Assembly: GCF_001194135.2 (NCBI RefSeq) | Contig: NC_068986.1 | Span: 103,730,620 to 103,791,444, forward strand | Direction of reading: 5' to 3' | Length of the DNA: 60,825 nt | Origin: Octopus bimaculoides | Lineage: Eukaryota | Part shown: positions 11,780-48,515 of the stretch, piece by piece | How the letters are laid out: each line of letters begins with the position of its first letter | How positions within the stretch are numbered: the stretch's first letter is position 1 | Made by a program: the position numbers and the translations under genes | Notes under the pieces: generated by a model | Told to the model about the DNA's origin: nothing | The model's database searches: none | What the model saw: the letters and a program-made list of their open reading frames with translations, nothing else

Positions 11780-12156
11780 GATGATGATGATGATGATGAT
11801 GGATGATGACGGATGATGATGGATGATGATGATGGATGGTGGATGATGGATGATGGATGATGATGATGATGGTTGATGATGATGATTGATGATGATGATT
11901 GATGATGATGATGATGGATGATGATGATGCATGATGATGGATGATGGTGATGGATGATGATGATGATTGATGATTGATGATAGTGATTGATGATTGATAT
12001 TGATGATTGGTGATTGATGGTTGATGATGGTGATTAATGATTGATGATTGATGGTGATAATGGATGATGGATGATGATGATACTGATGATGATTGATGAT
12101 GATTATTGATTGATGATGATGATGATGGATGATGATGATGATGATTGATGATGATA

Positions 12157-12200
<44 letters not shown>

Positions 12201-12452
12201 TGATGATGGATGATGATGATGGATGATGATGGATGATGATTGATGATGATGATGATGATGATGATGATTGATGATGGATGATTATGATTGATTGATGATG
12301 ATTGATTGATGATTGATTGATGATTGATGGTTGATTGATGATTGATTGGTGGTTGATTGATGATTGATGATTGATTATTGGTGATTGGTGATTGGTGATT
12401 GGTGATTGATGATTGATGATTGATGATGATGATTGATGATGATGATGATGAT
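11780..12452. repeat. Degenerate (GAT)n / GATT / GGAT complex microsatellite
   Basis: Direct reading; source of the spurious His/Ser/Ile ORFs. Confidence 0.95.
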
Positions 12453-12600
12453 ACCTTAGGAATCGAAATTCCCTCAAGACACCTGATGAAGTTTGGAGGG
12501 TATATCAGCCGAAACGTTGTGTTAACAAGATGAGGCAAATATCCGTCAAATGTAAATAATGTAAATAATGTACATAATTCCTCATCTCTCAAATATAGAA
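12453..12600 (+). mobile_element. Penelope-like element terminal remnant
   Basis: Contains the cctgatgaag...ccgaaacgttg motif typical of PLE termini, followed by an aatgtaaat repeat. Confidence 0.55.
12478..12523 (+). ncRNA. Minimal type I hammerhead ribozyme motif, canonical core
   Basis: Stem I GACAC/GUGUU, CUGAUGA, extra A, imperfect stem II GUUUG/CAGCC, GAAA, loopless palindromic stem III ACGU, triplet GUU. Confidence 0.6.
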
Positions 12601-13084
12601 ATGGTTAACAATATGCCTGCAAGGCCTCAAGCTGGCAGAATCTTTAGCATTTCTGTCCAAATATGGACCCTGTGAGTCAGAGTGACCCTTGAGGCGCATC
12701 TCCTTCGCCATCCTCTGTGGTAACGCCATTTCCATTTTGTCCGTTAGGACAATGATGCGGGTTGAGAAGTCTTTTTATAGAAAGAGGAGAGCTATGATGA
12801 TTTAAACAAAGAGGGGGCCAACATAGAGGGGGACAATGCAGCTTGATTTGGGGTCAGACACACACAATGAGTTTTAAAATTTACAACGAAATCGAATGAA
12901 AAATCGGATGGTAACACAAATCACAAGACAGATTAGCAAACATAAAATGGGACAGAACAGGTTTTAGCTCCGACCCCACGAGTCCTGTTCCACTACCGAC
13001 ACCTTTTGGTAAGCCTTAGGACATTTTTACGCAGTGTCTTTCACACAGAACATTCATGCTACACGTGTCCATCTGTCTTTGCAC

Positions 13085-14080
13085 ATTCTCGCGGAGAGGC
13101 ATCTCCTCTTCATTTTCAAGTAAAATGCTTAATGGTGTTTGTTCTAGCTCTTTACGTTCCGAGTTCAACTTCCAACGTGATCTACATTGCTTTTCATCTT
13201 TTCAATCATCAATCATCATCATCATCCATCACCATCATCCATCATCATGCATCATCATCATCATCATCAATCATCATCAATCATCATCATCAATCATCAT
13301 CATCAATCATCATCATCAACCATCATCATCATCATCCATCATCCATCATCCACCATCCATCATCATCATCCATCATCATCCATCATCATCCGTCATCATC
13401 CAATAAAATAAGTACCAGCTGAATACTGGGAGCCGATGTAATCGACACATCGATAAATCTTTTGTTAGAATATTTTATACGGTCTCTTGTCTTCCTCCGT
13501 GAAATCAAACGTCCCACGCTGTTTACAAATGCATATAATGTGAAACGAATAAATTACCTATAACCATTGACGCAATAAATAAAACGTTAATCGTAGTCAT
13601 GGCAACAAAAGAATAACATATAACAAGTCTTAAATTTTTGTATATTTGAATGAGATTGTTTCTAATTTTACGACTTTCAATTTATTTTTCCGTATCAGAT
13701 CAATAATATTCAACAAAAGGCGGCGAGCTAGCCGAAACGTTAGCACGCTGGGCGAAATGCTTAGCGGTATTTCGTCTGCCACTGCGTTCTGAGTTCGAAT
13801 TCCGCCGCGGTCGACTTTGCCTTTCATCCTTTCGGGGTCGATAAATTAAGTACCAGTTACGTACTGGGGTCGATATAATCGACTTAATCCGTTTGTCTGT
13901 CCTTGCTTGTCCCCTCTGTGTGTAGCCCCTTGTGGGCAGTAAAGAAATAGGTATTTCGTCTGTCTTTACGTTCTGAGTTCAAATTCCGCCGAGGTCGACT
14001 TTGCTTTTTATCCTTTCGGGGTCGATAAATTAAGTACTCCACCTATTCCGCCAGCTCGTCGCCTTATTCGGATTTAAATA
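13085..14080 (+). mobile_element. Cluster of family-C SINEs (13085-13450 interrupted by a CAT block; 13717-13950 full length; partial copy to 14080)
   Basis: Head ggcggcgagct..gcagaaacgttagcacgc, B-box gagttcaaattcc, core ttcatcctttcggggtcgataaa. Confidence 0.85.
13202..13401. repeat. Degenerate (CAT)n block, inverted copy of 11801-11977
   Basis: Shares rare interrupts (atgcat, cacc, caacc, ccgtc) in the same order as the reverse complement of 11801-11977. Confidence 0.85.
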
Positions 14081-23940: not shown

Positions 23941-24154
23941 ATACATACATATATATATACATATATACGACAGGCTTCTTTCAGTTTCCTCTACCAAATC
24001 CACTCACAAGGCTTTGGTTGGCCCGAGGCTATAGTAGAAGACACTTGCCCATGGTGCCACGCAGTGGGACTGAACACGGAACCTTCTGGTTGGTAAGCAA
24101 GCTACTTACCACACGGCCACTCGTATGTATATGTATATATATAATCTTTCATTT

Positions 24155-24393: not shown

Positions 24394-24540
24394 CATATAT
24401 TTACGACAGTCTTCTTTCAGTTTCCCCCTGGTCAAACCGATGTTATAGTAGAAGACACCTGCCCAAGGTGCCGCGCATTGGGACTGAAGCCGGAACCACG
24501 TGGTTGGGATCCAAGCTACTTACGACACAGGCACGCCTGC
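24155..24540 (-). mobile_element. SINE family B, full length, with internal (CA)n; another B head at 23948-24120
   Basis: Tail, microsatellite and head in reverse orientation. Confidence 0.8.
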
Positions 24541-26730: not shown

Positions 26731-26890
26731 ATAGTACAGGCTTCTTTCAATTACCGTCCACAAAATCCACTCACAAGAACTCTGTCAGCCCCAGGCTATA
26801 GTAGCAGACACTTACCCAATGTACCGCGCAGTGAGACTGAATAGGAAACCAGTGGTTAAGAAGCAAGCTTCTTACCACAGAACCACATAC

Positions 26891-27453: not shown

Positions 27454-27459
27454 TTTATT
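27454..27459 (-). terminator. Candidate polyadenylation signal AATAAA
   Basis: tttatt on + strand just downstream of the exon-4 stop; the motif is common in AT-rich DNA. Confidence 0.3.
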
Positions 27460-27501
27460 CTTTACAGAGAGTTCTAACAAAATCATACGCCGAATTTTCA
27501 T

Positions 27502-27569
27502 TTAACATGTAACCAGTTTCTTACGGGTAAAACGTCGTAATTTTAAAGCAATGATTGTCGGGTTGCAAA
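27502..27569 (-). CDS. Probable terminal coding exon 4
   Basis: Very strong acceptor (ctttcctttttctttttcttttatgcag). Phase 1 gives (V)CNPTIIALKLRRFTRKKLVTC*, starting x-Cys like exons 2 and 3. AATAAA ~42 nt after the stop; internal donor CCC|gtaaga at 27525 allows an alternative continuation. Confidence 0.6.
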
Positions 27570-28134
27570 CTGCATAAAAGAAAAAGAAAAAGGAAAGATA
27601 AATGAAAGAAAATCATTAAAGAAGACTTCATATAATTTGTTTCACAGATTGTTTTACAAAGTATCAGAATCGTTTTAGCTTTATCGGTGTATAACAAATA
27701 TATTAAATGTTTGAAACGATGCGGTATACGAGTTAATTCGATAATACATCAAACTTGTGAAGCGTTGAGGATATTGAGACAATGGTGTGGATGTGAGAAA
27801 AATGTTATCAAGTTACGATGGATGATTAGGGTTGCTGTGATTAGAGTTGAGAAATGAAAGATGTATGCAAATGGTATTCTTAAAGGAGAGGACAAATGTT
27901 TCGAATTTTACTAACGTTGATCAGTAAAAATAGATTACATACATAGCGAAGTTAAATTATATATACGTGAACGAATAGAAGAGCTAAGCGAGGGACATTC
28001 ACCCTATGTAATTCGCTGAAATACATTTTAAAAAATCCTATAAAAATATTTTCTCATTACTCCCCCCTCTCTGAAAATATACAAGCGTATAGTATAGTAC
28101 AGCGTACACACACACATATACAAGGAACACACAC

Positions 28135-28502
28135 ATAAAGCTATGACAACCACCGACTTGAGGGGCACTCCATAATACAATAGATACCGTCTTCTTCATC
28201 TAAGATAAGGACCCAGTATTGCAACAGCTTGTGGTTCAGTGTACCACAACTGTTAAAAATCTTACCCAAGAACATACGAGATTTGCAAATGGTAGAAGCG
28301 GAAACGTTCAAGAAGCTCCTGGACAAATTTCTATTTGAAATCCCAGACGAGCCCACATCGTGGCAGGAGGCACAAAGAAGAGCAGCTCCCTCCAGCTCGC
28401 TTCATCACTAAAAACAGTATCGAAAGGAGACGCCAAAACATCGAAAGGCAGTGATCCAGTATGGCCCCAGCCTCTGGCTGAAACCAGTAAAAGAATAAAA
28501 GA
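28135..28502 (+). mobile_element. CR1/L2-group LINE 3' end with 3'UTR
   Basis: NSLWFSVPQLLKILPKNIRDL...FKKLLDKFLFEIPDEPTSWQEAQRRAAPSSSL*; tail ctgaaaccagtaaaagaataaaagaat. Confidence 0.8.
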
Positions 28503-28503
28503 A

Positions 28504-28553
<50 letters not shown>

Positions 28554-28574
28554 ATTTAAATGGTTGGTAGGGAA

Positions 28575-28880
28575 GACTTTTTAAAAGTAGTGGTTTTTTT
28601 ATTGCAGCCCTCTCGTGAAACCCAGCTTTGTGCAGCTCCCAGCGAACAGTTTTGTGGAAACTTGGTTCTCAAAGTGGTCATTAAGATCTGCATTAATTTA
28701 CGGAACTGTATTTTTGCGATCCTTTCTAACAATTTGCGTAAGAGTCCGACGGTCCCTCTCTGAAAGTTTTGGTTTTCTTCCGGAGTTTTGTTTCAATGAG
28801 GAGGTTTTTCCTTCTTTCTCAAAGGCTGTTATTACTTTCGAGACAGTACTTCTTGATACACCAAGCATTTCGGGTGTTAA
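28575..28880 (-). mobile_element. Tc1 transposase N-terminal fragment
   Basis: LGVSRSTVSKVITAFEKEGKTSSLKQNSGRKPKLSERDRRTLTQIVRKDRK...ELHKAGFHERAAIKKPLL. Confidence 0.9.
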
Positions 28881-29254
28881 ATAGAATGAGACAACAAAGC
28901 CAAGGCAGAGTAGAATTTTCAGGACATTTATAAAGAGAAAGTTAGTCTTACAGCTGTTATCTTACAGTGAGATGGTGAGGGAAATATTAGAGTTATTAGA
29001 GTAGAGAAATATGTTATTTTGGAAAAGGAATCAAATAAGGAGTATATAGGGAAATAGGAGAAATGTAGAAACAAAAATAAAAATGTATAAAGATGTTATA
29101 CTTGCATTTCCATTATCCAAGGAAAGTGATGTGTAGAAGTGGTAGAAATGGTTTTTGCCCATGGTATGTAAATTCTAATAGGAGTTCATATCTTGTCATC
29201 ACAAGTGTAGAGACGTAGATTCCACGTGCTATTCATTGAATGAACAGCACATGG

Positions 29255-29795
29255 TATTTACGTCTCCCCTCTTCACGCGTCACCACAGTCACATGTCCCA
29301 GCAGGACAATGCTCCCTCCCATACGGCCAGGGTTACCATAGGCTTCCTGCGTCAGCACAACATCAGAACCATGCTGTGACCGGCTCTCACTCCGGATTTG
29401 AACCTAATTGAAACACCTGAAATACCAGAGATGGCTAAACCAGGTGGTCCCAAGGCCGATAACTCTTGTGGAACTGTAGGCAGCTTTCCTCAGGTTGTGG
29501 ACACAGGTGTCAATGGCTTTTGTGAATCGCCTCATGCACTCTATGTTCCGACGGTGTATGGCCGTTTTGAACACCCAAGTAGGGCATACACGGTATTGAA
29601 TCTGTCACGCCCTACAATCTCGATGTGCTGGATCCCCTCACTACCAGAACACATGACAGTGACCCATACACTGTGGTCAAAATGCATCCAAGAAATTGAC
29701 TTTATCAGATTTATCAAAATGTATCTCTGACATAATGGAATTAAAATATATATTTCAGTGTCACACACGTCTCGCGTTTCTTTTGCGGTTCAGTG
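29255..29795 (+). mobile_element. Tc1 transposon 3' half (DDE C-terminus and right end)
   Basis: QQDNAPSHTARVT...PALTPDLNLIE...SMFRRCMAVL...GHTRY*; ends ttcagtg followed by TA. Confidence 0.9.
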
Positions 29796-30050
29796 TATAA
29801 CTTTACGCTCATCAGAGTTAATCGAAATGGATAGGAATATGGTGACTGCTCTCTATTGTCGGAGGTGGATTAGCACAAGCGGTCAGCGGCTGCTGTGAAA
29901 AAGGTGGTGGAACGAAAAAGAGGCCAGGGGGCTTAGTTTAGGAGTTATGTCCCTTGGTTGAGTATGCTGTGAAGCCGTTAAGAGTTATCTTGAGGTAGGA
30001 AAAGTATGTATTATTAATGTGGTGCTCATATTTACAATTTTTCCGTGTGC

Positions 30051-30092
<42 letters not shown>

Positions 30093-30369
30093 NNNNNNNN
30101 NNNNNNNNNNNNNNNNNNNNNNNNNNNNNNNNNNNNNNNNNNNNNNNNNNNNNNNNNNNNNNNNNNNNNNNNNNNNNNNNNNNNNNNNNNNNNNNNNNNN
30201 NNNNNNNNNNNNNNNNNNNNNNNNNNNNNNNNNNNNNNNNNNNNNNNNNNNNNNNNNNNNNNNNNNNNNNNNNNNNNNNNNNNNNNNNNNNNNNNNNNNN
30301 NNNNNNNGTGTGTGTGTGTGTGTGTGTGGTGGTCTGTGTATATGTGGGGATACAATTTATGTGAAGGAG

Positions 30370-30470
30370 TATTAGGGTTACTGGAAGTTTGAAAATGCAG
30401 TCGAAGGACAGAAACAGTTTAGGAGGGAATTTCAAACGACTCATCCATGCAACTTGCCATCACTCAAATT
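30370..30470 (+). mobile_element. Tc1/mariner N-terminal HTH fragment
   Basis: YWKFENAVEGQKQFRREFQT resembles mariner-family N-termini; short. Confidence 0.4.
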
Positions 30471-30599
30471 AGGAATCAGAGAAGGCATTCTCCGTCGTTT
30501 ATTGCTCAGATGGCCTTACTTGTTGAGAAGTAGAGAAAATCAAGATTCTTATGAGTTCGTTGATATTATTTTTGTCAACCAACGAAATTATTAGCAGCA

Positions 30600-31250
30600 G
30601 TTTGGATGGTGAGATAGCTATGCGCTGTTTGATGTATGAAGTTATCTATCGATTTCTTGTTTTCGACAGTGGTGTTGTTGAAGTCAAGATGTTGGTTGAA
30701 AGGTGCATTATTTTGAGGCATGGGTCAGTTTCTTCTTCTGTTGTTGGGGTTGGCTTTTACCTAGCTGCAGCGCAACTATGAATAAATCACTCGGAGAATT
30801 TAGCGCATTGAGCTTTTGTTGATTGTGGAATGGAGCGGGATGTGTCTAAAATTATCGTTTCAGTCATGTGCTTAGCCGTTTTAAATGGGCCAGGAGTGAA
30901 GCACAAATACAGCCAGAGATTGATGGTATAAAAACTGGTGGGACTCTGATAATTTAGCAGACTTGAAAAGCAATAAGACGCACATGAGAAAAGCGTGTTA
31001 TGTGATACTAGTATATGTGTCGGAAACAGTGATCGGATGACCCCATAGGTGTAGAGAATGTTATAGTATGTTTGAGATTAGGTCTGGAAGCGAGAAAGAG
31101 TTCGAGTATGTTTGGGGTGTCCGAGTGTCAACCTGTGATGATCTGTGTAGAGATTAAGTGAAGTTGATTTTGAGATGAATCAAGTCGATGTAATGAATGG
31201 AGAATTACGAAAGATTCGGTTTCTGAATCGACTGCATCAGTTTGCGATAA
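30600..31250 (-). mobile_element. Old CR1/L2-like LINE remnant (APE C-terminus)
   Basis: LTQII...NILELFLASRP...PMGSSDH matches the C-terminal APE motif (LDLFL...GSSDH); heavily degraded. Confidence 0.45.
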
Positions 31251-31471
31251 GCAGGAAAACTACAAGGAGTGGCACATCTTGTACTGACCGACGTGGCTGG
31301 CTTCGGACTGGTGTGAAGTGATATGCTGGTCATCTGAAGAATTTCCTGGGAGTAGATGGGCTTGTGTGTGTAGAAAGAGTATATGTGTATGTGTATACTT
31401 TGTGAGTGTTTGTGTCCGTGTCAGCTTGAATTTCAACAAACGATAAAATGAAAATATATATATATATATAC

Positions 31472-31603
31472 CTTGTTCGGAGCGTATACCTAAAATAGGT
31501 TGATTATTTTGAATATCGCAGTATTCCGTTACACATAGATTATTGACGGCACCCATCCATGTTTCACCTGCGCTTAAGCAATTTCCGCTGTTAACTTTGC
31601 AAT
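31472..31603 (-). CDS. Coding exon 3, Cys-rich module 2
   Basis: Polypyrimidine tract with ttctaat branch-like site and ctcag acceptor, donor AAG|gtatat, 132 nt, phase 1-1, open: (Y)CKVNSGNCLSAGETWMGAVNNLCVTEYCDIQNNQPILGIRSEQ. Lies within ORF 31260..31661. Confidence 0.85.
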
Positions 31604-33337
31604 CTGAGAACATTAAAGAAATTAGAATTAAAAGAAAAAAATAGTATCTTAATATACACATGTTAACTTCACCTACTAACTCGTTTTCTCTATCTCCACA
31701 TTCATTACTTTTTCTCCCTCACTATCAATCTCCCTATACATAAATAGATATGAAATATATATTTATTTGTTGTTGTACATCTATATATATATATATANNN
31801 NNNNNNNNNNNNNNNNNNNNNNNNNNNNNNNNNNNNNNNNNNNNNNNNNNNNNNNNNNNNNNNNNNNNNNNNNNNNNNNNNNNNNNNNNNNNNNNNNNNN
31901 NNNNNNNNNNNNNNNNNNNNNNNNNNNNNNNNNNNNNNNNNNNNNNNNNNNNNNNNNNNNNNNNNNNNNNNNNNNNNNNNNNNNNNNNNNNNNNNNNNNN
32001 NNNNNNNNNNNNNNNNNNNNNNNNNNNNNNNNNNNNNNNNNNNNNNNNNNNNNNNNNNNNNNNNNNNNNNNNNNNNNNNNNNNNNNNNNNNNNNNNNNNN
32101 NNNNNNNNNNNNNNNNNNNNNNNNNNNNNNNNNNNNNNNNNNNNNNNNNNNNNNNNNNNNNNNNNNNNNNNNNNNNNNNNNNNNNNNNNNNNNNNNNNNN
32201 NNNNNNNNNNNNNNNNNNNNNNNNNNNNNNNNNNNNNNNNNNNNNNNNNNNNNNNNNNNNNNNNNNNNNNNNNNNNNNNNNNNNNNNNNNNNNNNNNNNN
32301 NNNNNNNNNNNNNNNNNNNNNNNNNNNNNNNNNNNNNNNNNNNNNNNNNNNNNNNNNNNNNNNNNNNNNNNNNNNNNNNNNNNNNNNNNNNNNNNNNNNN
32401 NNNNNNNNNNNNNNNNNNNNNNNNNNNNNNNNNNNNNNNNNNNNNNNNNNNNNNNNNNNNNNNNNNNNNNNNNNNNNNNNNNNNNNNNNNNNNNNNNNNN
32501 NNNNNNNNNNNNNNNNNNNNNNNNNNNNNNNNNNNNNNNNNNNNNNNNNNNNNNNNNNNNNNNNNNNNNNNNNNNNNNNNNNNNNNNNNNNNNNNNNNNN
32601 NNNNNNNNNNNNNNNNNNNNNNNNNNTTTCCGAGTGAATAACATATATATTGGGTCGTAAATAGCATATATATATGTCATTTATAAACATATCCATAAAT
32701 ATATACATATACATACACACCAACACACATACATATATATTCAACTACATACATACACAGGTAGAAATATACTGACGCACATATTCATATATAACTACAC
32801 ACACATATATATATATATAGTACATATTCTCGCGGCAACGACATAAAGACATACATATGTTAAAATATACGTTTACGATCACATACTTATACACATAAAC
32901 AAGCGATCATATACATACACAAGAGCATACACATCCCTAAACATCGATAGATCCAAACACATAATTGTATACACATACACATACTTACTTAAGCACATAT
33001 ACATTGTTGTTCATTCACAAAATACTTACATCCGAACAGGGAATGCTAGGAATTTAAAATGGCGTTATAAAAACAGATATTGTGAGAGGAGAAATTGCAT
33101 AGAAAGATAAGGACAGAGAAAGAAAGGAAGGGTAAAACAAAGAGAGAGTGAGACAGAGAAAGAGGGGAGAGGAAAGGGCGAATTGTAAATATAAAAAGAA
33201 TGCATGAAAATAAAAGAAAAGAAGGGGAGAGGGGACAAATTATGGGAAGTAAGATGGAAGAAAAAATAAAATTTGCAGAAATTACTATTAGGTTATGGGA
33301 AGAAATTATTTGAAAGAATTAAAAAGCTATAAATTGT

Positions 33338-33398
<61 letters not shown>

Positions 33399-33854
33399 TA
33401 NNNNNNNNNNNNNNNNNNNNNNNNNNNNNNNNNNNNNNNNNNNNNNNNNNNNNNNNNNNNNNNNNNNNNNNNNNNNNNNNNNNNNNNNNNNNNNNNNNNN
33501 NNNNNNNNNNNNNNNNNNNNNNNNNNNNNNNNNNNNNNNNNNNNNNNNNNNNNNNNNNNNNNNNNNNNNNNNNNNNNNNNNNNNNNNNNNNNNNNNNNNN
33601 NNNNNNNNNNNNNNNNNNNNNNNNNNNNNNNNNNNNNNNNNNNNNNNNNNNNNNNNNNNNNNNNNNNNNNNNNNNNNNNNNNNNNNNNNNNNNNNNNNNN
33701 NNNNNNNNNNNNNNNNNNNNNNNNNNNNNNNNNNNNNNNNNNNNNNNNNNNNNNNNNNNNNNNNNNNNNNNNNNNNNNNNNNNNNNNNNNNNNNNNNNNN
33801 NNNNNNNNNNNNNNNNNNNNNNNNNNNNNNNNNNNNNNNNNNNNNNNNNNNATC

Positions 33855-36046
33855 CCTCCAATTTGAGTTTTTTTTCGATACAGTTACAAATTAAAATTTT
33901 TTTACGTTTGGTATCAACTTCCAGCAACTTCGTTTCTTTTTCTTTCGCTTGTGCGATATATGATATTTGAAAAGAATCATATCACCATTCCATTGGCTCT
34001 TCTATTCTCTTGGGTTCGCTCTCAACTAATCTTTGTGTTTAGTTCATTTATATATCTCTTGTGCACCCATTTTCTTCCTTTTACCAAGTATAGCATTTTT
34101 CCTATGCGTTTGGTAATCACGCTGTCTTCTCAACTTTGCTTTCCGTTCTTATATGTCCTAACAAATGCATTTTCACCAATTTTGAAATATCTTGCTGTAT
34201 TATCAATTGCAATTTTTCTTTTCTTACCAGGTAGTAATTTGTCGAAGACTGATTTTAGTTGACTCGCAAACATCAACTCCACTGGTAATATACCTGGTGG
34301 TGTATTTAGATTTGGAGTCCTTCGATATACTCTTAGGAATATTTGTAGAGCTACTTCGTCCGTGATTTCCTAATTCGACTTTCTTATAGCTCTCCTGACT
34401 GTATCGAGAAAACGTTCTGCCTGTCCGTTAGATCTGGGATGGTGTGGCGCAGTAGTTACATGTTCTACAGCGAACGTTTTACAAAACCTTTTAAACTCAA
34501 AAGACACAAGTTGCATTCCATTATCAAACACTATCGCGGCTGGGACTCCAAATCTCGCAAACATCTCATGTAGAAAGTTTGTCGTAGTTAAGGAGGTTGG
34601 CTTTTTACACTTACAAATTTCTACCATTTAGTGAAACTATCTACTACCACTAAATATTATGAAACGTTTAAGGTGGGCAGCTAAGTCAATGTGGGGTCTC
34701 GACCACGGAACATCTACTTTCGGCCAAGATTCGCTTTTTATCGTCGGTAATTTTGCTGCCAGATCACATCCTATACAGCCTTTTACTAAATTTTCACTTT
34801 CTCTATCCATTTTGGCCAGTACACGTAGCTACGAATTAAAGCTTTCATCCTCGAAATATCAGGATGTCCAACATGGAATTCCCTCAACCGTTTCTTTTGT
34901 AGTGTTTCAGGCATCACTTTCTTCTCTGCATACATTAGTACGCCATCACAAATTAAGTGTAGGTTCACGTCTTAGTTTCATTTCGCATCCATCCTGTTCC
35001 TATTTACTTTCCCTGATCACAGTATTTTAAAAAAATTCTGTTATGAATTTGTCCTTTTCCGCATTTTGTTTTATGTCTTCAAGGGTCCCCGGTAATTCGC
35101 ATACCAAATTCCACATTACATTTTTGATTTCTCCTTCTGATCTTAATGCTGCGATTATCGTATCATCGAATGGCTCACTGTGTTTCGGTATCAGTCTGGG
35201 CGAACCATCTGCATGCCCTTGTTTCTTTGACGGTAAATATTCCATTTTGAAATCATAATTCAATAATGTAATGCCCCATCGCTGTAGTCTATTAGCTGCG
35301 TGTGTTGGTATTCCTGTTTTAGAACCATATATCGACAGTAGTGAGCGATGATCCATTGTAGACAGAAACTTCTCCCATGAATAAATCTATGGAACTTTTT
35401 ACACCGAATATAATTTCTAACGCTTCCTTTTCTATTTGGCTGTAGTTCCTCTCTGCTGATAATAACGATCAGGACGCATGTCCTACACCCTTTTCACTCC
35501 CATCTTCATATTTGTACAGACGCATGGCTCCTATACTGTAATCACTTGCATCTGTAGCCAATATAATTTCCAACTTCGGATCAAAATGCATTAACGATAA
35601 ATTTGATGTTGAAATGTTTTTTAATTTGTCAAATGATTTCTGGCACTTATCAGTCCAGCACCATTTTGCATTTTTCGTTAACAAATCATTTAGCAGAGCC
35701 CTTACATTGTGTATACTGGAATATAAATTTGGTAGTTATTTACTAATCCCCAAAATGCCTGAAGCACGGTCACATTATTCGGTGTGGCTATATTTTTTAT
35801 CGCAGTTACTCTGGATGGATCCGGTTTCCATCCGTTTTTATCTATTATCTGGCTCAAGTATTTAATTTTTTTTCAGAAAGAACTCACACTTTTCTTCATT
35901 TAGCTAAAAACCGTATTCTCTTATTTTTTCAAATACCCTTTTTACGTGTTCTACATGTTGTTCGTATGATTCGTGTTGTATTAGGATACCGTCTAAATAG
36001 GGATTACAAAATCTCAGTCCGCTAGCATTGGATTCATTACTTGTTG
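33855..36046 (-). mobile_element. Ty3/Gypsy LTR retrotransposon pol remnant (RT, RNase H, integrase), degraded
   Basis: Frameshifted translations: YLDGILI (RT YxDD-like), ATDASDYSIG and ERNYSQIEKEAL (RNase H), HVGHPDISRMKALIRSYVYWP (integrase Zn-binding), FGVPAAIVFDNG and HPRSNGQAERF (integrase core). No LTRs seen. Confidence 0.95.
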
Positions 36047-36204
36047 ATTCCTGAACCAGTTGGCGTCTTTTATCCTTGAGCAAGGTGCTTCATTTCACGT
36101 TGCTCCAGTCTACTCGGCTGTAAATGAGTACCAGCTAAGTGCTAGTGCGGCCCTTTCTCCTAGGTCTAAAAGTTGGGAGTGATGCATAGGTATCTATGTG
36201 TAGG

Positions 36205-36544
36205 CAGTGGCGGACTGGCCAGGTTGACACCTTTCCAGATGGCAAGTGGACCATGTGCCATTAGATTCCATATATGGGGGTCCATGTTAGTATCTTAGGG
36301 GCCCACCCCCTAAAATTTGAGAATTTGTTTTATTCACTCCTGGAAGACTGCATTGATTATTTCAGCCTGGATACGTCTGTAGACAGTTGAAAAGAATACT
36401 TTTAACAAAAAAGAAAACAAATTAAATGATTGTATTGTAGTTGCGGGTGGGCCCCCTTGTAGTTGCTGGTGGGCCCCCTCATAGTTACTGGTGGGCCTCC
36501 TTAGTTTCCTGGCAACCAATATTTCTAGACCCAGTCCGTCACTG
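36205..36544. mobile_element. hAT-type MITE
   Basis: 14-bp TIR cagtggcggactgg / ccagtccgtcactg; perfect 8-bp TSD tgtgtagg; three internal gtagttgc.ggtgggcccc-like repeats. Confidence 0.9.
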
Positions 36545-36569
36545 TGTGTAGGTATCTATTTCGCTTCAG

Positions 36570-37238
36570 TAATATGACTGCGGCCATGCTGGGGCATCGG
36601 CTTGAAAGTTTTAGTCGAACAATTCAATCTCAGTAGTTTTCTTTTTAAATCTAGTTATACTTTATCGACCTTTTTGTCGAGCCACTAAGTTACGGATGCG
36701 TAACAAACCAATAACGGTTGTCAATTAGTGAAGGCGGAGTCAAGCACAAACACAAATACAAGTACATTCACACATATGTATATGTACGACGGGTTTCCAC
36801 ATACTTACCATCTACCAAGGCATTGGTTGGCTCCTCGCTATAGTAGTAAACAATTGGTCAGTAAGGTCCTCGCAGTGTGACTGAGTCCGAAATCACGTGG
36901 TTGCAAAGCAAGCTCCGTAACTACACAACCATGTCACAGGCATCGAAAGCAATTAGCGAAAGTATGGTACATTCTACCAGATTATATTTGCTTACCAGTG
37001 ACGGCTATGAATGATCACACACGCACATATATTATGTGGAATGAAATATTAATATTCTATTGCTTGTTTCAGTTATTTGACTGCAGCCATGCTGGAGCAC
37101 CACCTTCAGTCGAGCAAATCGACTCCAGGACTTATTCTTTGTAAGCCTAGTACTTATTCTATCGGTTTTATTGCCGAACCGCTAAGTTACGGGGACGTGA
37201 ACACATCAACATCGGTTGTCAAGCGATGGTGGCGGGGA

Positions 37239-37303
<65 letters not shown>

Positions 37304-37480
37304 ACACACATACACTCACAGACACACACACATATATACTACGGGATTCTTTCAGTTTCCTTCAATAAATCCACTTACAAGGCTTTGGTCAGCCTGAGAT
37401 TATAGTAGAAGACACATGCCCTAGGTACCATGCAGTGGGACTGAAACCGGAAACTTCTTATCACGCAGTCACACTGCGCC
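36570..37480 (-). mobile_element. Two family-B SINEs (36570-36940, 37060-37480)
   Basis: Both show the gactgcggccatgctgg tail, an internal (CA)n and the cagtgggactgaa head. Confidence 0.8.
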
Positions 37481-37699
37481 TAATATATAGAATAAGTGAT
37501 AACGAGTATGAACTAAATAAAAATTACGTGTGACACATTAGATTGTTTGCACAGTCGAAGTCCCAGAGACGTTTCATCGGAGGTGGCCAGCACTGAAATG
37601 TTAATGTGTATTTTTGACGGAAACTTTATCGTTTGTTAAAAACTTTTCCGTTTATTCCCGTCACTAAAACCTCGTGTAAAGACAATCGTTTATTCTTTT

Positions 37700-37908
37700 A
37701 ATTGTTTCAGTCATTTGACTGCGGCCATGCTGGAGCACCGCCTTTTGTCGAGCAAATCGGCCCCAGCACTTATTCTTTGTAAGCCTAGTACTTATTCCAT
37801 CGGATCTCTTTTGCCGAACCGCTTTGTTACGGGGACGTAAACACACCAGCATCGGTTATCAAGCGATGTTGGGGGAATAAACACACAATATAAACATATA
37901 CACACACG

Positions 37909-37973
<65 letters not shown>

Positions 37974-38430
37974 ACACATATAAGTCGGCGATCTGGCAGA
38001 AACGTTAGCACGCCGGGCGAAATGCTTAGTGGTATTTCGTCTGCCGCTACGTTCTGAGTTCAAATTCCGCCGAGGTCGACTTTGCCTTTCATCCTTTCGG
38101 GATCGATTAAATAAGTACCAGTTACGCAATGGGGTCGATATAATTGACTGAATCCGTTTGTCTGTCCTTGTTTGTCTGTCTTTGTTTGTCTGTCCTTGTT
38201 TGTCCCCTCTGTGTTTGGTCCCTCGTGGGCAGTAATGAAATAACACACATATATACATATATGTATACGTTGGGCTTCTTTCAGTTTTTGTCTACTAAAT
38301 CCACTCACAAAGCTTTGGTCGGCCCGAGGGTATAGTAGAAGACACTTGCCCAAGGTGCCACGCAGTGGGACTGTAACCTGGAACCATCTGGTTGGTATGC
38401 AAGCTACTTACCACACAGCCACTCCTGCAT
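37700..38430 (-). mobile_element. Family-B SINE whose internal microsatellite hosts a family-C SINE (37985-38240, +)
   Basis: B tail 37700-37900, (CA)n, full C copy, B head 38270-38430. Confidence 0.85.
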
Positions 38431-38883
38431 AACACTTTCCTCATCCCATCACCTAAATATCTTTAGTTTATTTATAAGCAAACATTAGCTGTTATGGTTT
38501 ATAATTGATAACAGAAATTGAGGTTTCATATAAAGGGCACGTGATCAAGACGAGAGCTTTTCATTGACTGAATTTTTACTCCACCTTTTTACTACATTCT
38601 TTATTTGTCCATTTAACGGTTGCTATTGTCTAATTTCCTCCTGAATTTACCGACACCTTAAGTTTTGCACCAAGTTTTCTATTTTCTTTACGGTTTTTTA
38701 AAATATATATTTCACTCCCACTATTTGTTTGTATAACAACTCTTTGTTTCTCTCTTTGTCTCTGTACACATACACATCCACACACAAATACACACACCCA
38801 CTTCTCCACGAGAGTAACTTTCCCCCACACATTTCCATGTTTCAATCTATAGGTACCAAAAATGATATTTACTTTTTACTTAC

Positions 38884-39006
38884 ACGTCTCAATAGTTGAT
38901 AGTTTGTTCTTTTTGCATTCAAGTTCCTTACATTCATTCTTTCCTATATAAATGCCTTTTTGATTATTGCAGAAGCATTGTCCATCATAGTAACATCCAT
39001 TACATT
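38884..39006 (-). CDS. Coding exon 2, Cys-rich module 1
   Basis: Acceptor tttgcag, donor T|gtaagt, 123 nt, phase 1-1, open: (E)CNGCYYDGQCFCNNQKGIYIGKNECKELECKKNKLSTIET. Confidence 0.85.
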
Positions 39007-39299
39007 CTGCAAACCGATTATAAAGACGAAGTATATTTATCAATAAAAAATAAACAAACGTAGTTTCATTTTTGTCTTCTGATTTTTATGACTGAATGCG
39101 AATCCTTTTAACCTTAGTAAGTTTAAGTTTATGTAAACTGAGAGATTCTAGGTGAGTTTACTTCACTCAAATATTAAATTACCGTATTTAATCGTATATA
39201 AACTGCACCCACTAAATTAGTGTTAAATCTTTGTATAAAATGTCTTTCCTTAATAGTTGAAGCTTTGCCTCTTGCATAAACTTTGCGCCATCCTCCATA

Positions 39300-39344
<45 letters not shown>

Positions 39345-40329
39345 NNNNNNNNNNNNNNNNNNNNNNNNNNNNNNNNNNNNNNNNNNNNNNNNNNNNNNNN
39401 NNNNNNNNNNNNNNNNNNNNNNNNNNNNNNNNNNNNNNNNNNNNNNNNNNNNNNNNNNNNNNNNNNNNNNNNNNNNNNNNNNNNNNNNNNNNNNNNNNNN
39501 NNNNNNNNNNNNNNNNNNNNNNNNNNNNNNNNNNNNNNNNNNNNNNNNNNNNNNNNNNNNNNNNNNNNNNNNNNNNTATATATATGTACCATTTTCTGCA
39601 GAGATATTTCCGGAATTAGCGCGCCAAAACGAAGACATTTGAATTTTACCATTAAGTTGTAATTAGCAGAACCATATACGCGTTCGCCACTAGGGGTGAA
39701 CAACTTGTATAGGATTCTGAAAATTATGCTTTCCTTACAGTTCGTGCTGACGAGAAACAGATATTTTCGGTAAGAGAATATTAATTTCAAAACTAGTACA
39801 CGAATGATAATTTTTTATTTTTTATTTATGTAATTTTCACTGTCTTGCCCGCATACGGTTCGGTATTTCGCTGAATTTAATTTGAGAACTATTAGGTCTT
39901 AGTAGACACATTACATGTGATCTTATTCTAGCACATTAACAGTCCACTTAGTGGTCGTCGTTATATATATATATATACACACACACACATATATATATAT
40001 CTTACTTATTTGTGCAGAAGTTGCCCTTCACTAATGTTTTTTTTTTCTGTTAAAATGAAGTACAAATTAGTTGAACTTATTCACGAGTAAATACGGTAAA
40101 GCTTTCGAAATGGGAGTAAATAGTTTAATAGAACGAATGCAGGGAACATTTTGGGAGGATAAAATGTTTAACAGATATGAGAAAAAAAATGCTTTTTACG
40201 AAATCGGGGAATTTATGTATTGGAAAAGGTTAAGAGAAAAAAATGAAGATTGAATGACTGAGAACAAGGATACCTAGTATCCACAGACAAAAAGAATTAA
40301 GGCATTGATTCGTGGGCCAATGTTTTATT

Positions 40330-41570
40330 AATGCTTTCTACTATGGGCACAAAACCTGATATCTAAGGGAGGAGATGAGTTGATTATATCGACACCACTG
40401 CTCAACTGGAGCTTATTATCGATTATTATCGATTCCTAAAAGGACGACATGCAATGCTTTATAGTGATTTCAAATTCTGACACATGACCAGCAGTTTTTA
40501 AGGGCAGTGGGAGGGAAGTTGATTACTTGGCTGGTACTCCTTTCATTGGCTCCTTAATGAAGGAAAGACAAAGTCAACCTCAGCGGAATCCGAACACAGA
40601 AATCAGAGACGGACGAAATGCAGCGAATGGTTCTACCAACTCCACGCCTTGGGAAATGTTTTAATGTTTATTTGTTTCTAGAAAGAATACAAAAAGAGGC
40701 CACAGTGTAACTCATGAAACTGCGTCCTTATTTGTAGCTCAGGAAGAGCTTTCGAGTACATATAACCTCGTTTATTACAAATTCATTCATCACTGATCCG
40801 AGGTAACACGGTAATTCGGTTGTGGACCATGTTATGTTTACTGCGGATTGATCTATGATAGCACGAGTCGACGATTAGTCAAAGATTCTGCTTGTATCGC
40901 AAAAGCGTGCTGCAGCGTTTACGCACAAAGCTCAGGTAGTTAGAATGCACTGGCTACCGCTTGTGCTTATGCGACCGTACTGAGTCGCTGTGTGTTGTTT
41001 ATACGGCTTTAAGTACTCAAGCTCATCAATATGGCGTCAGTGAACAGAAAATATGCGAAGGCGTCGTATCGTAGCAAACAGCACAGACGAAAGTACTCGA
41101 AGAAAAATCAGAGATGATCAAGAAAATATGTAATGGTGGAAGCTTCGCAGCTGTAGGCCGCGAGTTTGGCGTCAATGAATCTACCATTCGTTCCCTTTGC
41201 AAAATACATGATCATTCACCCAGCATTGATTCATTCATGAGTGCCTTTTTAACCGCATTTCCGTGATAAACGAGAATAGAAGTACTAGATTATTTCTTTC
41301 TATGTGAGTTCCGGAAACCTGGATAGTTTTTAACGCAGGTGATCAATATTATGTTCGAAAGTAAGGCTGCGAGCTAGCAGAACCGTTACCACGCCGAAGA
41401 AAATGCTTATCGGCGTTTCGTCCGTCTTTACCTTCCGTCGAGGTTGACTTTGCTTTCATCGTTTCAGGGGCGAGGAAATAAGTGCCAGTTGAACTTTGGG
41501 ATCGATATAATCGGCTAACCCCGCTGCCCGGAAATTGCTGGACTTGTGCCAAAATTTGAAACTAATATCT
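40330..41570. mobile_element. Diverged family-C copies, (-) 40330-40650 and (+) 41365-41570
   Basis: C core and head motifs; other C copies lie at 1318-1490 (+) and 8805-8910 (-). Confidence 0.65.
40790..41200 (+). mobile_element. Tigger/pogo transposon 5' remnant
   Basis: ATG at 41031; frameshifted ...EEK.EMIKKICNGGSFAAVGREFGVNESTIRSL is a CENP-B/psq-type HTH. Confidence 0.7.
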
Positions 41571-41717
41571 TCGAGAGTAGAGAGCAGGGTTAAGTTTTGT
41601 AGCGGAATCAGAAAAACCTGATTTATGTTGCTTTCTAATGATTTAGACAATAACCTATATTTAAGTCAGCTTGACCACTTTTAGGAGCCCAGATTTAGGA
41701 ATTTGTTGTGGAAGGAT

Positions 41718-42111
41718 TTGTTTTTGTGTTGGCACTCCGTCGGTTACGACGACGAAGGTTCCAGTTGATCTGATCAACGGAACAGCCTGCTCGTGAAATT
41801 AACATGCAAGTGGCTGAGCACTCCACAGACACGTGTACCCTTAACGTAGTCCCCGGGGGAGATTCAGCGTTACACAGAGTGTGACAAGGCTGGCCCTTTG
41901 AAATACAGGTACGAAAGAAACAGGAAGTAAGGGTGAAAGGAAGTTGTGGTGAAAGAGTACAGCAGGGTTCGCCACCAACCCCTGCCGGAGCCTCGTGGAG
42001 CTTTAGGTATTTTAGTTCAATAAACACTCACAACGTCCGGTCTGGGAAACGAAATCGCGATCCTACGACAGCGAGTTCACTGCCCTAACCACAAGACCAT
42101 TGCACCCCCAC
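41718..42111 (-). mobile_element. SINE family A, full length
   Basis: Reverse complement of the A consensus; 11-bp TSD tgtggaaggat / tgtagaaggat. Confidence 0.9.
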
Positions 42112-42790
42112 TGTAGAAGGATGCTGAGTCCCGAAAACCAATTTAGACAACAGTTCACCGTAGTATCAGGAAGTTTGAAATATTGAAGGTGACAAGAAGG
42201 ACAAAGATAGACGGCTTCATCATTAATATCATCAACCCCTGGACATAACTGTCAGTTGTCCTAGGACTCATTGGTCCGGTTATCAGTTTTCCATGGCGTA
42301 TAGATGACAGATTACAACATTCCAACAGCCGTTGTAGGGTTACTTCTTTACGGCTGAGTGGACTGGAGCAACGTGAAATGAAGTGTTTTACTCAAGAACA
42401 CAACATACCACCCAGTCCGGGAAACGAAACTATGACCTAGCGATAGTGAACGCAACACGCTAACCACTAAGCCACACACTAGGGTTTCGAATGGGCTAAA
42501 ATTAGGATCGTATACAGCTAGAAAGATCACTGAAATATAAAAAAAGTTTAAAAAAAGATATTGTTATATCTTGGGATGGTCACTTTTCATAAATGCATGC
42601 ACTATATTATTCGTTCTTCACTTCACCTTTATTATTGTTCTTATTGTTGTGTCCTTTGTCTTAAATCTTTCGTCATACATCCCGTGATATCCTCAGTGAA
42701 TGTCTCCTCCTGTTCTGTTAGTGTCTATTGTGTCTTTTTAAAAAGATTAAGATCATAAAACTTAAAGAGATTAAGATAGTAGATACTTAC

Positions 42791-42863
42791 CTGCAGTGAC
42801 AATGTTATTTGTAACAGCATAAAGGACGAGAAGTGGAAAGAAAGCTATTGAATATATATACAT
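42791..42863 (-). CDS. Coding exon 1 (signal peptide) of a predicted secreted cysteine-rich protein
   Basis: Long polypyrimidine acceptor (ttttgtttctttcttttttttttttacag) directly followed by ATG; 73 nt; perfect donor CAG|gtaagt. Only the ATG frame is open: MYIYSIAFFPLLVLYAVTNNIVTA (hydrophobic core, V-x-A cleavage motif); ends in phase 1. Confidence 0.8.
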
Positions 42864-43156
42864 CTGTAAAAAAAAAAAAAGAAAGAAACAAAAGAGAAAA
42901 GTATAAAATATGTTTTGTATTATCAATCTTGCCTTTTACAATTTTCTTGTTTCAGTCATTTGACTGATGCCATGGTGGAGCACCGCTTTGAAGAAGCCTG
43001 TCGAAAAGTTTTAGTACTAATGTCTAAGGTCTAATGGATATTCTATTGGGAGTCTCTTAGTGGGACACAGATACACACTTGTACATACATACATACATAC
43101 ATACACACCCATATTCATGCGTGTGTGTAATGTATATATATATATATATATATATA

Positions 43157-43288
43157 CAAAATACAATGTTTATATACCAAAAAGATTTTATAACATCTTT
43201 CTAACATTTTTCTTACATTTTTCTGACATAATTTAAATATATACTTTAACCATGTAACACAAGCCTTCTGTAGTTTTTTCACTCTTAT

Positions 43289-43333
<45 letters not shown>

Positions 43334-43463
43334 AAATACAATGTTTATATACCAAAAAGATTTTATAACATCTTTCTAACATTTTTCTTACATTTTTCTG
43401 ACATAATTTAAATATATACTTTAACCATGTAACACAAGCCTTCTGTAGTTTTTTCACTCTTAT

Positions 43464-43500
<37 letters not shown>
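43157..43500. repeat. Exact ~175-bp tandem duplication with (TA)n junctions
   Basis: caaaatacaatgtttatatacc...tattatctttta occurs at 43157 and 43332. Confidence 0.9.
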
Positions 43501-43799: not shown

Positions 43800-45390
43800 A
43801 AAAAACAATGGCCCATAATGGTGTTTGTAATACCAGCATTCATACCAACATTTCGGTTGCTTGATTGGACGCTTGATGAGATGTGAGCCATTGATATGAA
43901 AACCCGGAAGATATTAACAAACACATAATTTCCACATCAAAAGTGACGTAGACCGCCTCTACCTAAAACCAAAACGAAGCGACAATGGCTTAACATTGAT
44001 TCGAACTGTCTTTGAATGTCGTATCCTATCTCTTTGGAAACATCTATTAACCACTAAGTGTCGAAGTGTATCCCTTGACCAACTTTGCATACAAGAGGCT
44101 GATAATATCATAAGATTTGGGAAGCAGCTTCGTGAGCAGCATTCCTTGTCTGATAACCTTAGATACATGGCCAAAGAAGTCGGACGACTCTACCGCAATG
44201 TATCATCAGATGAAAGGATGAGCGTATATCAGCAGAAGACCATAGATGGATATGTTAGTAGAAAGCTCCGAGATGATAGTAACATTGATGATCAAATCAG
44301 TCTATCATGGACCAACAACCGGATTACTACCTCCCACTTTGAAAGGTATGCGTTTGCAATCTAGGAACAGGAAATATCAAACAAATACCTGATGCACAAG
44401 AGGGACAGAGATGCAGAAAAAGCAGCAAAATATGACAACCGATGCAGTCTTTGTGGAGTTAACACCGAAGATATCACCCACATCATAAACAGTTTTCCGA
44501 AAATGTCATCACGGTATTATCTACCGATGAGACATGATGTTGTAACTACAACAGTCTATAATGAAATCCGTCGGAAGGATAATTCCAAGGACAAAGAAAT
44601 AAGAACCCTCAGTATGGCGAAAGCCATAGCCACTCATAATAAAAAGGAGTACTGGTAGAATGTCCTAGTGAAACCTCAGTAAAATGTAAACATAATAGAC
44701 CTGACATAAGGATTTGGGCTAGAGAAGGGCAACTGTGTACGGATGTGGAAATCATCTGCCCAGCAGAGGTTATCATAAAACTAAAAATCAGCGAAAAAGA
44801 AAATACTTACGCTGAACTATTGAGGAATCTACAGCTATTCTATCCAGATTACAAGTTCAGGTTTATACCCGTAATTATTGGGGCACTGGGATATGTAACA
44901 CACTGCCTAAACATCAATCTTGAGAAGTTAGGCTTCTCAAAACCAGAAAGAAGAAAGCTGATTCGAAGACTACCGATCCAATCAATCACTGGAACTGTAA
45001 AAATTTGTAAAACTTTGCAGAAGTTTATCATTTAAGTATATAGGAGCATGTCTAGATATGCAAGTATTTGCATGAGAATACATACATAAAACAAAATATA
45101 CAAATCAGCACATATACATACACACACATACATACATGCATACATACATACATACATACATACATACATACATGCATAATATATACATACATACGTACGT
45201 ACATACATGATGGCTGCTCCACATACATATATACATACATACGTACAGGCATACATTCATACATAGAAAAATACCCTGTTGCTGATGTTCAAATTCCAGT
45301 GAAGGAACCTTGGATCTAGGTTAGAAACCGGCTCTTTCTTTATTGTCAAGAAATCTTGAAATAAAACTGATCAGTGACATACATACATAC
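43800..45390 (+). mobile_element. 5'-truncated R4/Dong-type non-LTR retrotransposon (RT end, CCHC knuckle, RLE), degraded
   Basis: DVDRLYLKPKRSDNGL, RCSLCGVNTEDITHI, RHD, HNRPDI, KENTYAELL, IPVIIGALG; stop at 45035. Probable 3'UTR has a hairpin ATGCAA-GTAT-TTGCAT (45058-45073) and (CATA)n tracts. Confidence 0.9.
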
Positions 45391-46164: not shown

Positions 46165-46378
46165 TTAGACTTAAGGGTCCACATAAGGGTTTGTTGCTAA
46201 AATGTATGTGTTCCGGGTTCAGTCCCACTGCGTGGCACCTTGGGCAAGTGTCTTCTACTATAGCCTCGGGCCGACCAAAGCCTTGTGAGTGGATTTGGTA
46301 GACGGAAACTGAAAGAAGCCCGTCGTATATATNNNNNNNNNNNNNNNNNNNNNNNNNNNNNNNNNNNNNNNNNNNNNN

Positions 46379-47900: not shown

Positions 47901-48515
47901 ACGCAGGCGTGGCTGTGTGGTAAGTAGCTTGCTTACCAACCACATAGTTCCGGATTCAGTCTCACTGCATGGCACCTTGAGCAAGTGTCTTCTACTATAG
48001 CCTCGGGCCGACCAAACCGTTGTGAGTGGATTTGGTAGGCGGAAACTGAAAGAAGCCCGTCGTATATATGTATATATGTATATATATATATGTGTGTGTG
48101 TGTGTTTGTGTGTCTGTGTTTGTCCCCCCTCCATCGCTTGACAACCGATGCTGGTGTGTTTACGTCCCCTTAACTTCGCGGTTCGGCAAAAAGAGACCGA
48201 TAGNNNNNNNNNNGGCCGACCAAACCGTTGTGAGTGGATTTGGTAGGCGGAAACTGAAAGAAGCCCGTCGTATATATGTATATATGTATATATATATATA
48301 TATGTGTGTGTGTGTTTGTGTGTCTGTGTTTGTCCCCCCTCCATCGCTTGACAACCGATGCTGGTGTGTTTACGTCCCCTTAACTTCGCGGTTCGGCAAA
48401 AAGAGACCGATAGAATAAGTACTAGGCTTATAAAGAATAAGTCCTGGGGTCGATTTGCTCGACTAAAGGCGGTGCTCCAGCATGGCCGCAGTCCAATGAC
48501 TGAAACAAGTAAAAG
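47901..48515 (+). mobile_element. SINE family B, full length (middle duplicated by the assembly)
   Basis: Head acgcaggcgtggctgtgtggtaag through tail gactgaaacaagtaaaag. Confidence 0.9.
48006..48413. other. Probable assembly artefact or haplotype overlap around a 10-N gap
   Basis: 48006-48203 equals 48214-48413 except for the (TA)n length. Confidence 0.8.

Follow-up and report, generated by a model that had tools for sequence, protein, structure and literature searches.

Lineage-restricted, tandemly expanded families of secreted cysteine-rich proteins often underlie venom, immunity, reproduction and chemical communication, and cephalopod novelties of this sort are poorly characterised. Here we analyse LOC106872966, a gene on the minus strand of a 60,825-nt stretch of the Octopus bimaculoides genome (the window: contig NC_068986.1, positions 103,730,620 to 103,791,444 of the forward strand; positions below count from the first letter of this stretch unless another record is named). 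Two described protein groups lie closest to its product. The predicted fold of the octopus protein moderately resembles pairs of fibronectin type I (FnI) modules, in which two small beta modules follow one another, each with a hairpin and a three-stranded sheet under disulfide bracing and each, as in the octopus gene, on a phase-1 exon of its own. Unlike FnI, which is part of a large mosaic chordate protein, the octopus product is a free-standing 12-kDa mollusc protein that has no sequence or profile similarity to FnI, carries its Cys in other number and spacing, and adds a C-terminal tail that would be closed by a disulfide. Ly6/uPAR proteins such as CD59 resemble it in size, in 10 Cys within the unit, in an N-terminal C-x-x-C and in a gene made of a signal exon and two domain exons. 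These common features are generic, and the resemblance fails in the Pfam models, the profile comparison, the CCxxxxCN motif, the predicted fold and the glycosylphosphatidylinositol (GPI) signal.

The nearest relatives are other Octopus genes, which share with LOC106872966 a separate signal exon, phase-1 exons of 123, 132 and 68 nt, the spacing of 12 Cys and a conserved core. We consider it highly probable that LOC106872966 is an intact protein-coding gene from a multigene family of small secreted 12-Cys proteins restricted to Octopus, in which it is divergent and isolated, and that its product is a secreted, disulfide-braced extracellular binding protein. The family is lineage-restricted and tandemly expanded, and LOC106872966 has one exon for the signal peptide, two for the modules and one for the tail. 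The value of the locus is modest and lies in this family, which has at least 12 paralogues on one chromosome and for which we found neither a Pfam model nor a paper.

Gene structure and annotation

LOC106872966 encodes a 131-residue, 12-Cys protein in four minus-strand exons, which we read and spliced by script into a 396-nt coding sequence. Coding exon 1 (42863-42791, 73 nt) holds the ATG (42863-42861), the predicted signal peptide MYIYSIAFFPLLVLYAVTNNIVTA and the first base of the Glu25 codon, and is followed by a GTAAGT donor. Exon 2 (39006-38884, 123 nt, phase 1-1) encodes the first predicted beta module, ECNGCYYDGQCFCNNQKGIYIGKNECKELECKKNKLSTIET, with six Cys, and exon 3 (31603-31472, 132 nt, phase 1-1) the second, (Y)CKVNSGNCLSAGETWMGAVNNLCVTEYCDIQNNQPILGIRSEQ, with four. 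The coding part of exon 4 (27569-27502, 68 nt including the TAA stop codon at 27504-27502) encodes the tail, (V)CNPTIIALKLRRFTRKKLVTC, which has 21 residues, Cys as both its first and its last residue, and a net charge of +6. The donors of introns 1, 2 and 3 read GTAAGT, GTAAGT and GTATAT; each of the three acceptors combines a polypyrimidine tract with AG, and every junction is phase 1. An AATAAA lies on the same strand at 27459-27454, 42 nt past the stop codon, and is a predicted polyadenylation signal. The window contains no second copy of the gene.

An earlier note, written by a reader that saw only the raw letters, had rebuilt this spliced 131-residue gene correctly to the base. Its exon coordinates, protein sequence, 12 Cys and phase-1 introns match our splicing exactly, and the downstream AATAAA that it reported is present. 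That the exons form a real gene is confirmed by the databases and by exon lengths and phases shared with a paralogue and an orthologue. At 131/131 residues (100%) the product agrees with RefSeq XP_014775640.1 (LOC106872966, Octopus bimaculoides), which corresponds to UniProt A0A0L8H3R2, and it is also in EukProt; the RefSeq entry is labelled "PREDICTED", uncharacterized protein LOC106872966. Chromosome record CM046606.1 (GCA_001194135.2) contains the DNA of the window, gaps and all; on it, window position p falls at 103,748,121 + (p - 17,502) and the gene at ~103.758-103.773 Mb. LOC106872966 is already annotated in public databases, and the gene itself is no discovery. The earlier description of it as cryptic does not hold, as an identical model has stood in RefSeq, UniProt and EukProt for years. 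Only a prokaryote-style track of open reading frames (ORFs) misses it, because it is split into exons of 68-132 nt; the six-frame ORF list of the window shows only a read-through ORF of exon 3, at 31260-31661.

A signal peptide is predicted from hydrophobic residues 1-17, a V-x-A/E cleavage pattern (the slash marking the cut) and the conserved separate signal exon. Immediately before the ATG stand a polypyrimidine tract and CAG (42864-42900, minus strand), and the same ...ttacag-ATG arrangement is found in the O. bimaculoides paralogue LOC106872050 and in O. sinensis LOC118763690. Two paralogue models, P0016 and P0014, continue through the acceptor-like site from an upstream exon. Taken together, the acceptor-like tract abutting the ATG here and in paralogues and the read-through models suggest a non-coding 5' exon upstream of 42864, and the tract is probably the 3' end of an intron in the 5' untranslated region (5'-UTR). 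A blastn search with paralogue 5' exons did not find the presumed 5'-UTR exon; its matches were dispersed repeats only. An acceptor-like tract plus CAG before the signal-exon ATG was also seen in paralogues at L002 9981-10000 and L004 10688-10707. The N-terminal extensions of the RefSeq paralogue models P0004, P0014 and P0016 come from upstream-exon read-through at this junction; with them the signal peptide would no longer stand at the N-terminus, so they appear to be annotation artefacts.

The octopus family and its evolution

An exhaustive phmmer scan of 1.84 billion representative sequences returned 12 relatives (E 3.8e-23 to 4.6e-4), each ~70-170 residues long, with matches covering residues 1-131; the gene product scores E 5.5e-43 against the family profile. 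All 24 relatives recovered by phmmer, profile searches and cluster look-ups come from O. bimaculoides, O. sinensis or O. vulgaris, and two profile searches found no member outside Octopus, adding only further Octopus proteins. This distribution bears out the earlier suggestion of a lineage-specific cephalopod secreted peptide, and the empty Pfam and PDB sequence searches agree with its failure to recognise a named family. In Pfam the gene product matches no family at E <= 10, and the 13 family members searched give four single-member chance matches (E >= 0.04), none to the LU clan. Against PDB sequences the best E-value of the protein is 0.6, a chance match to flavivirus prM, and the family profile has no match. 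Literature searches on the LOC, XP and UniProt identifiers of the gene and its relatives, and on family peptide motifs, found no paper. Searches on O. bimaculoides Ly6 and octopus cysteine-rich lineage-specific families, and on Octo-SAP (an 11-kDa sperm attractant of O. vulgaris), returned nothing relevant.

In O. bimaculoides the family occupies at least 12 loci, all on one 117-Mb record. Members besides LOC106872966 include LOC106872050, LOC106869804, LOC106869796, LOC128248058, LOC128248081 and LOC128248166, -167, -169, -170, -177 and -178; members in the other species include O. sinensis LOC118763690 and LOC118763715, and O. vulgaris CAI9723912 and others. Two placed paralogues lie at 106.80 and 107.17 Mb, and LOC106872966 stands ~3 Mb from them, alone in its window. 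The isoforms P0011, P0015 and P0005 were also sought, and none is recorded. Around relatives we noted an orphan tail exon in O. bimaculoides (L003 1439-1504), which lies 8.5 kb upstream of the placed paralogue LOC128248058, and a match resembling a 5' exon 4.4 kb upstream of an O. vulgaris gene (L005 5496-5593). Such extra family exons flanking paralogues point to tandem arrays with further copies, which may be unannotated or partial.

The family gene layout is a signal exon followed by 123-, 132- and 68-nt exons in phase 1, with an acceptor abutting the ATG, and LOC106872966 has all of these. Its exons measure 73/123/132/68 nt; those of LOC106872050 and O. sinensis LOC118763690 measure 106/123/132/68 nt, with the same phases. 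At the protein level, the alignment of fifteen family units is essentially free of gaps between first and last Cys, a span of ~107 residues in almost every one, at 23-40% identity. The ten Cys of the unit are invariant across these fifteen and the two tail Cys are at least 90% conserved. The spacing is C-x2-C-x5-C-x-C-x12-C-x4-C-x11-C-x6-C-x14-C-x4-C-x16-C-x19-C, with Cys as the last residue, and the conserved core carries the motifs C-K-D-x-x-G-x-C and G-x-x-x-N-x-C-V-x-x-x-C. 

Exons 2 and 3 together encode a 10-Cys unit of 85 residues. LOC106869796, with 216 residues and 22 Cys, has two such units and one tail, an arrangement which suggests that the unit stands by itself and that the tail has a disulfide of its own, between its two Cys. 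The basic C-terminus singled out in the earlier note is no hallmark of the family: the tail of LOC106872966, at +6, is the most basic, and those of the other members range from -3 to +4. Two further ideas about the protein found no support. An amphipathic, antimicrobial-like tail was not borne out, since its hydrophobic moment of 0.72 was reached by 345 of 2000 shuffles. Nor was an internal duplication making the exon 2 module (module A) homologous to the exon 3 module (module B), for which hhalign gave E 0.26, though three Cys align.

LOC106872966 differs from its relatives in being only 23-40% identical to them, in its distance from the placed members, and in a tail that is strongly basic and without their D/E-H motif. 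Compared with LOC106872050, it shows a nonsynonymous divergence (dN) of 0.67 and a synonymous divergence (dS) of ~1.0; an intact frame and 12/12 Cys at such divergence argue for long-term selection. A closer comparison, between LOC106872050 and O. sinensis LOC118763690, gives dN 0.101, dS 0.138 and a ratio of 0.73, with every Cys and exon length kept. Taken separately, the 10-Cys unit of this pair has dN/dS 0.44 and the tail 1.1, and aligned introns differ at 0.10 per site. From the one orthologue pair, the family appears to change at a nearly neutral rate and yet keep every Cys and exon length. The near-neutral rate, the strict retention of Cys and the tandem expansion would together fit a fast-changing interaction role.

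Predicted fold, proposed role and rival explanations

Structure prediction followed by Foldseek, which the earlier note had proposed as a check, placed FnI module pairs at the top for both models, at moderate scores and without sequence support. AlphaFold2 with the family alignment gave a mean predicted local distance difference test score (pLDDT) of 76.7 for the precursor, and for the mature protein a pLDDT of 84.7 and a predicted template-modelling score (pTM) of 0.71. In the mature model, pLDDT is ~85-94 over the first 80 residues, which hold both modules. The predicted fold is an all-beta core with a short C-terminal helix in the tail, the helix at lower confidence. In module A the model shows a hairpin and a sheet of three strands (strands spanning mature residues 4-7, 10-13, 16-21, 25-32 and 35-44; pLDDT ~90-94), and module B has strands at 56-61, 64-73 and 76-83. 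Against PDB, the top Foldseek matches of both models are the FnI pairs 8-9FnI (3EJH/3GXE), 2-3FnI (3CAL/2CG6/2CKU) and 1-2FnI (1QGB), with probability 0.8-1.0, E 2e-3 to 0.4, rmsd 4.4-6 Å and 11-16% identity. Target-normalised TM-scores are 0.34-0.57, for chains made of an FnI module pair or triple. FnI module pairs, to which the predicted fold comes nearest, would not be expected in a mollusc. As modelled, the protein seems shaped like an FnI pair; we do not file it as an FnI family member.

We propose that the precursor would enter the endoplasmic reticulum and be cleaved after Ala24, between Ala24 and Glu25. The two modules would then fold into hairpin/three-stranded-sheet fingers, with an arrangement like that of an FnI pair and five disulfides to hold them, and a sixth disulfide would close the tail into a loop. 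The product, of ~12.1 kDa and pI 8.5, would be secreted and act as an extracellular binding protein. On the conserved disulfide scaffold, variable surfaces and a tail peculiar to each paralogue (strongly basic in this case) would face a target. Candidate roles, to be read as conjecture, are defence, prey handling, reproduction or chemical signalling.

Several observations weigh against this interpretation. The AlphaFold2 alignment holds only 13-15 sequences. The fold match is moderate, with no Foldseek E-value at or below 1e-3 and the rmsd given above, and it has no sequence support, as the hhalign probability against FnI is 0.25% and no member matches the fn1 Pfam model. No O. sinensis or O. 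vulgaris protein exceeds ~40% identity to LOC106872966. Other members do have close orthologues there, one pair falling in a single 90%-identity cluster and another differing at 29 of 142 residues, and the orthologue of LOC106872966 may be unannotated or lost in these two species. The tail of LOC106872966 is without the C-x-x-(D/E)-H motif with which most relatives begin theirs. One contig only, that of the genome itself, has the exact protein on record, and the gene is known here from genome sequence.

A bolder version of the proposal goes further than the family membership and secreted binding protein that we favour. The family may be an undescribed one that was born or radically remodelled in the octopus lineage. 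A self-contained, two-finger 10-Cys unit with the shape of an FnI pair and a variable, disulfide-closed tail would have multiplied into twelve or more quickly evolving secreted ligands for an octopus-specific function, such as venom or saliva, chemotactile sensing by the suckers, skin defence or gamete recognition. We hold this only tentatively, as an idea more doubtful than not.

Could the shape reflect descent? The modules might be true, very divergent homologues of FnI or of von Willebrand factor C (VWC)-type fingers, binding extended peptides by beta-strand addition. In two independent models no structures but FnI module pairs match consistently, the predicted strand order of module A (a two-stranded hairpin, then three strands) fits the FnI plan, and each module occupies one phase-1/phase-1 exon, as vertebrate FnI modules likewise do. 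We nevertheless regard this homology as unlikely. The fn1 (PF00039) profile matches none of the 13 family members, against E 1.3e-29 for the 2-3FnI control, whose sequence was verified against 2CG6; the hhalign probability is as low as stated above; and the Foldseek matches combine 11-16% identity with E-values that do not reach 1e-3 and TM-scores of at most 0.57. FnI modules carry four Cys in ~45 residues, with C-x-C in the fourth strand and disulfides 1-3 and 2-4. The octopus modules depart from this plan, with 5-6 Cys each at different spacing (six in exon 2, four in exon 3 plus the tail Cys) and C-x4-C in the corresponding strand. Modules A and B, moreover, bear no detectable resemblance to each other by hhalign, and FnI modules are regarded as chordate-restricted, which also counts against homology.

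The gene could instead be a silent or decaying copy whose model is no longer expressed or useful. The "PREDICTED" status of the RefSeq entry, the lack of an annotated close orthologue in two other Octopus genomes, the ~3 Mb that separate it from placed paralogues, the missing D/E-H motif and the near-neutral rate of the family overall would all suit such a copy. Its condition does not. Its reading frame is unbroken, the six splice signals are all canonical, the 12 Cys are kept, exon lengths are unchanged at ~35-40% identity to paralogues, and the AATAAA is present. Divergence without a frame break or the loss of a Cys speaks for long-lasting selection, and we judge a silent copy very unlikely.

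Less credible still, and in our view highly improbable, is that the product is a Ly6/uPAR three-finger protein with an LU domain, acting like receptor modulators of the Lynx/CD59 type. The idea has a source in the databases, where A0A0L8H3R2 bears the UniProt/UniRef name "UPAR/Ly6 domain-containing protein". The protein also has 10 Cys in ~85 residues, a C-x-x-C start, two phase-1 exons after the signal-peptide exon and a C-N dipeptide after the unit; uPAR and Ly6 genes have a similar layout for their LU domains, with a signal exon and two domain exons. Yet neither the protein nor 12 relatives match UPAR_LY6, Toxin_TOLIP or CD59 in Pfam at E <= 10, whereas a CD59 control, its sequence verified against PDB 1CDQ, matches all three models (PF25152, PF00087 and PF00021, that is CD59, Toxin_TOLIP and UPAR_LY6). 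The hhalign probability of the family profile against CD59 is only 0.08%. As there is no CC dipeptide, there is no CCxxxxCN motif, and the residue after the eleventh Cys (Cys110), which is N here, varies in the family among T, M, F, L, R and N. Among the top 50 PDB matches of both Foldseek runs on the predicted models there is no three-finger, Ly6 or toxin chain. No hydrophobic stretch follows residue 25, so a C-terminal GPI signal, which is common though not universal among Ly6/uPAR proteins, is absent; the last residue of the basic tail is a conserved Cys. UniProt calls the paralogues simply "Uncharacterized protein". No test made here reproduced the UPAR/Ly6 label, found in one database; it appears wrong and is probably a spurious automatic assignment.

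The chance that the exons are a fortuitous concatenation of short ORFs, or transposon-derived, is virtually nil: the locus is full of SINE-like (short interspersed nuclear element) copies, microsatellites and degenerate mobile-element ORFs, but no exon is overlapped by repeats, the gene is single-copy in the window, and homologous genes in three species have the same exon lengths and phases, so that the family alignment and shared exon structure rule it out.

Introns, gaps and repeats of the window

The three introns on the minus strand, with lengths as assembled, are intron 1 at 39007-42790 (3784 nt), intron 2 at 31604-38883 (7280 nt) and intron 3 at 27570-31471 (3902 nt). Of 17 runs of N in the window, four lie within the gene, all of them intronic: 39345-39576 in intron 1, adjoining (TG)n; 31798-32626 and 33401-33851 in intron 2; and 30093-30307 in intron 3, adjoining (TA)n. 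The closest gap to any exon is 195 nt away. Three of the four adjoin (TA)n or (TG)n microsatellites, the usual cause of unread stretches. Since the gaps are spliced out with the introns, their length has no effect on the reading frame. The earlier note had warned that they could hide extra exons; colinearity with paralogues excludes this for coding exons, as the gap-free family alignment from first to last Cys leaves no room for one. A match of the exons to a transposon, which the same note named as evidence that would overturn the gene, was not seen: no repeat family overlaps any exon.

Intron 2 also holds SINE-like copies, (AC)n and a retroelement-like ORF. The SINE-like element is ~175 nt long and has at least 12 copies in the window at 73-92% identity, two of them in intron 2. 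Copies lie on the minus strand at 781-955, 5885-6055, 7036-7204, 46210-46332, 47911-48079 and 48214-48287, and on the plus strand at 23943-24118, 24429-24530, 26739-26879, 37314-37458, 38201-38420 and 52685-52769. By eye, its reverse complement opens with a tRNA-like head containing motifs resembling box A and box B. ARAGORN and Rfam did not call the element, and the Rfam and tRNA scans of the window were empty. Every copy continues into (TA)n or (CA)n, and several adjoin assembly gaps.

Short ORFs that by eye resemble decayed mobile-element proteins occur at 4019-4390 (plus), 35027-35356 (minus), 43996-45035 (plus) and 59033-59611 (plus). The types recognised in this way are a mariner-type transposase N-terminus, a retroelement RNase H/integrase junction and C-terminal tails of ORF2 of long interspersed nuclear elements (LINEs); Pfam gave no significant match to the mobile-element-like ORFs of the window. 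The degenerate retroelement-like ORF at 35027-35356 is the one in intron 2. At 11573-13422, low-complexity "ORFs" of up to 339 residues, rich in His, Ser and Ile, run on both strands; they reflect simple repeats of trinucleotide type and are not genes. Intron 2 further contains two minisatellites, at 36435-36502 (22-nt unit TTGTAGTTGCTGGTGGGCCCCC, 3.1 copies) and at 38156-38204 (14-nt unit GTTTGTCTGTCCTT, 3.5 copies). Upstream of the gene, a perfect tandem duplication at 43130-43479 repeats a 175-nt AT-rich unit 2.1 times, the copies being 99-100% identical; it lies ~270 nt upstream of the ATG exon, in the presumed 5'-UTR intron or promoter region.

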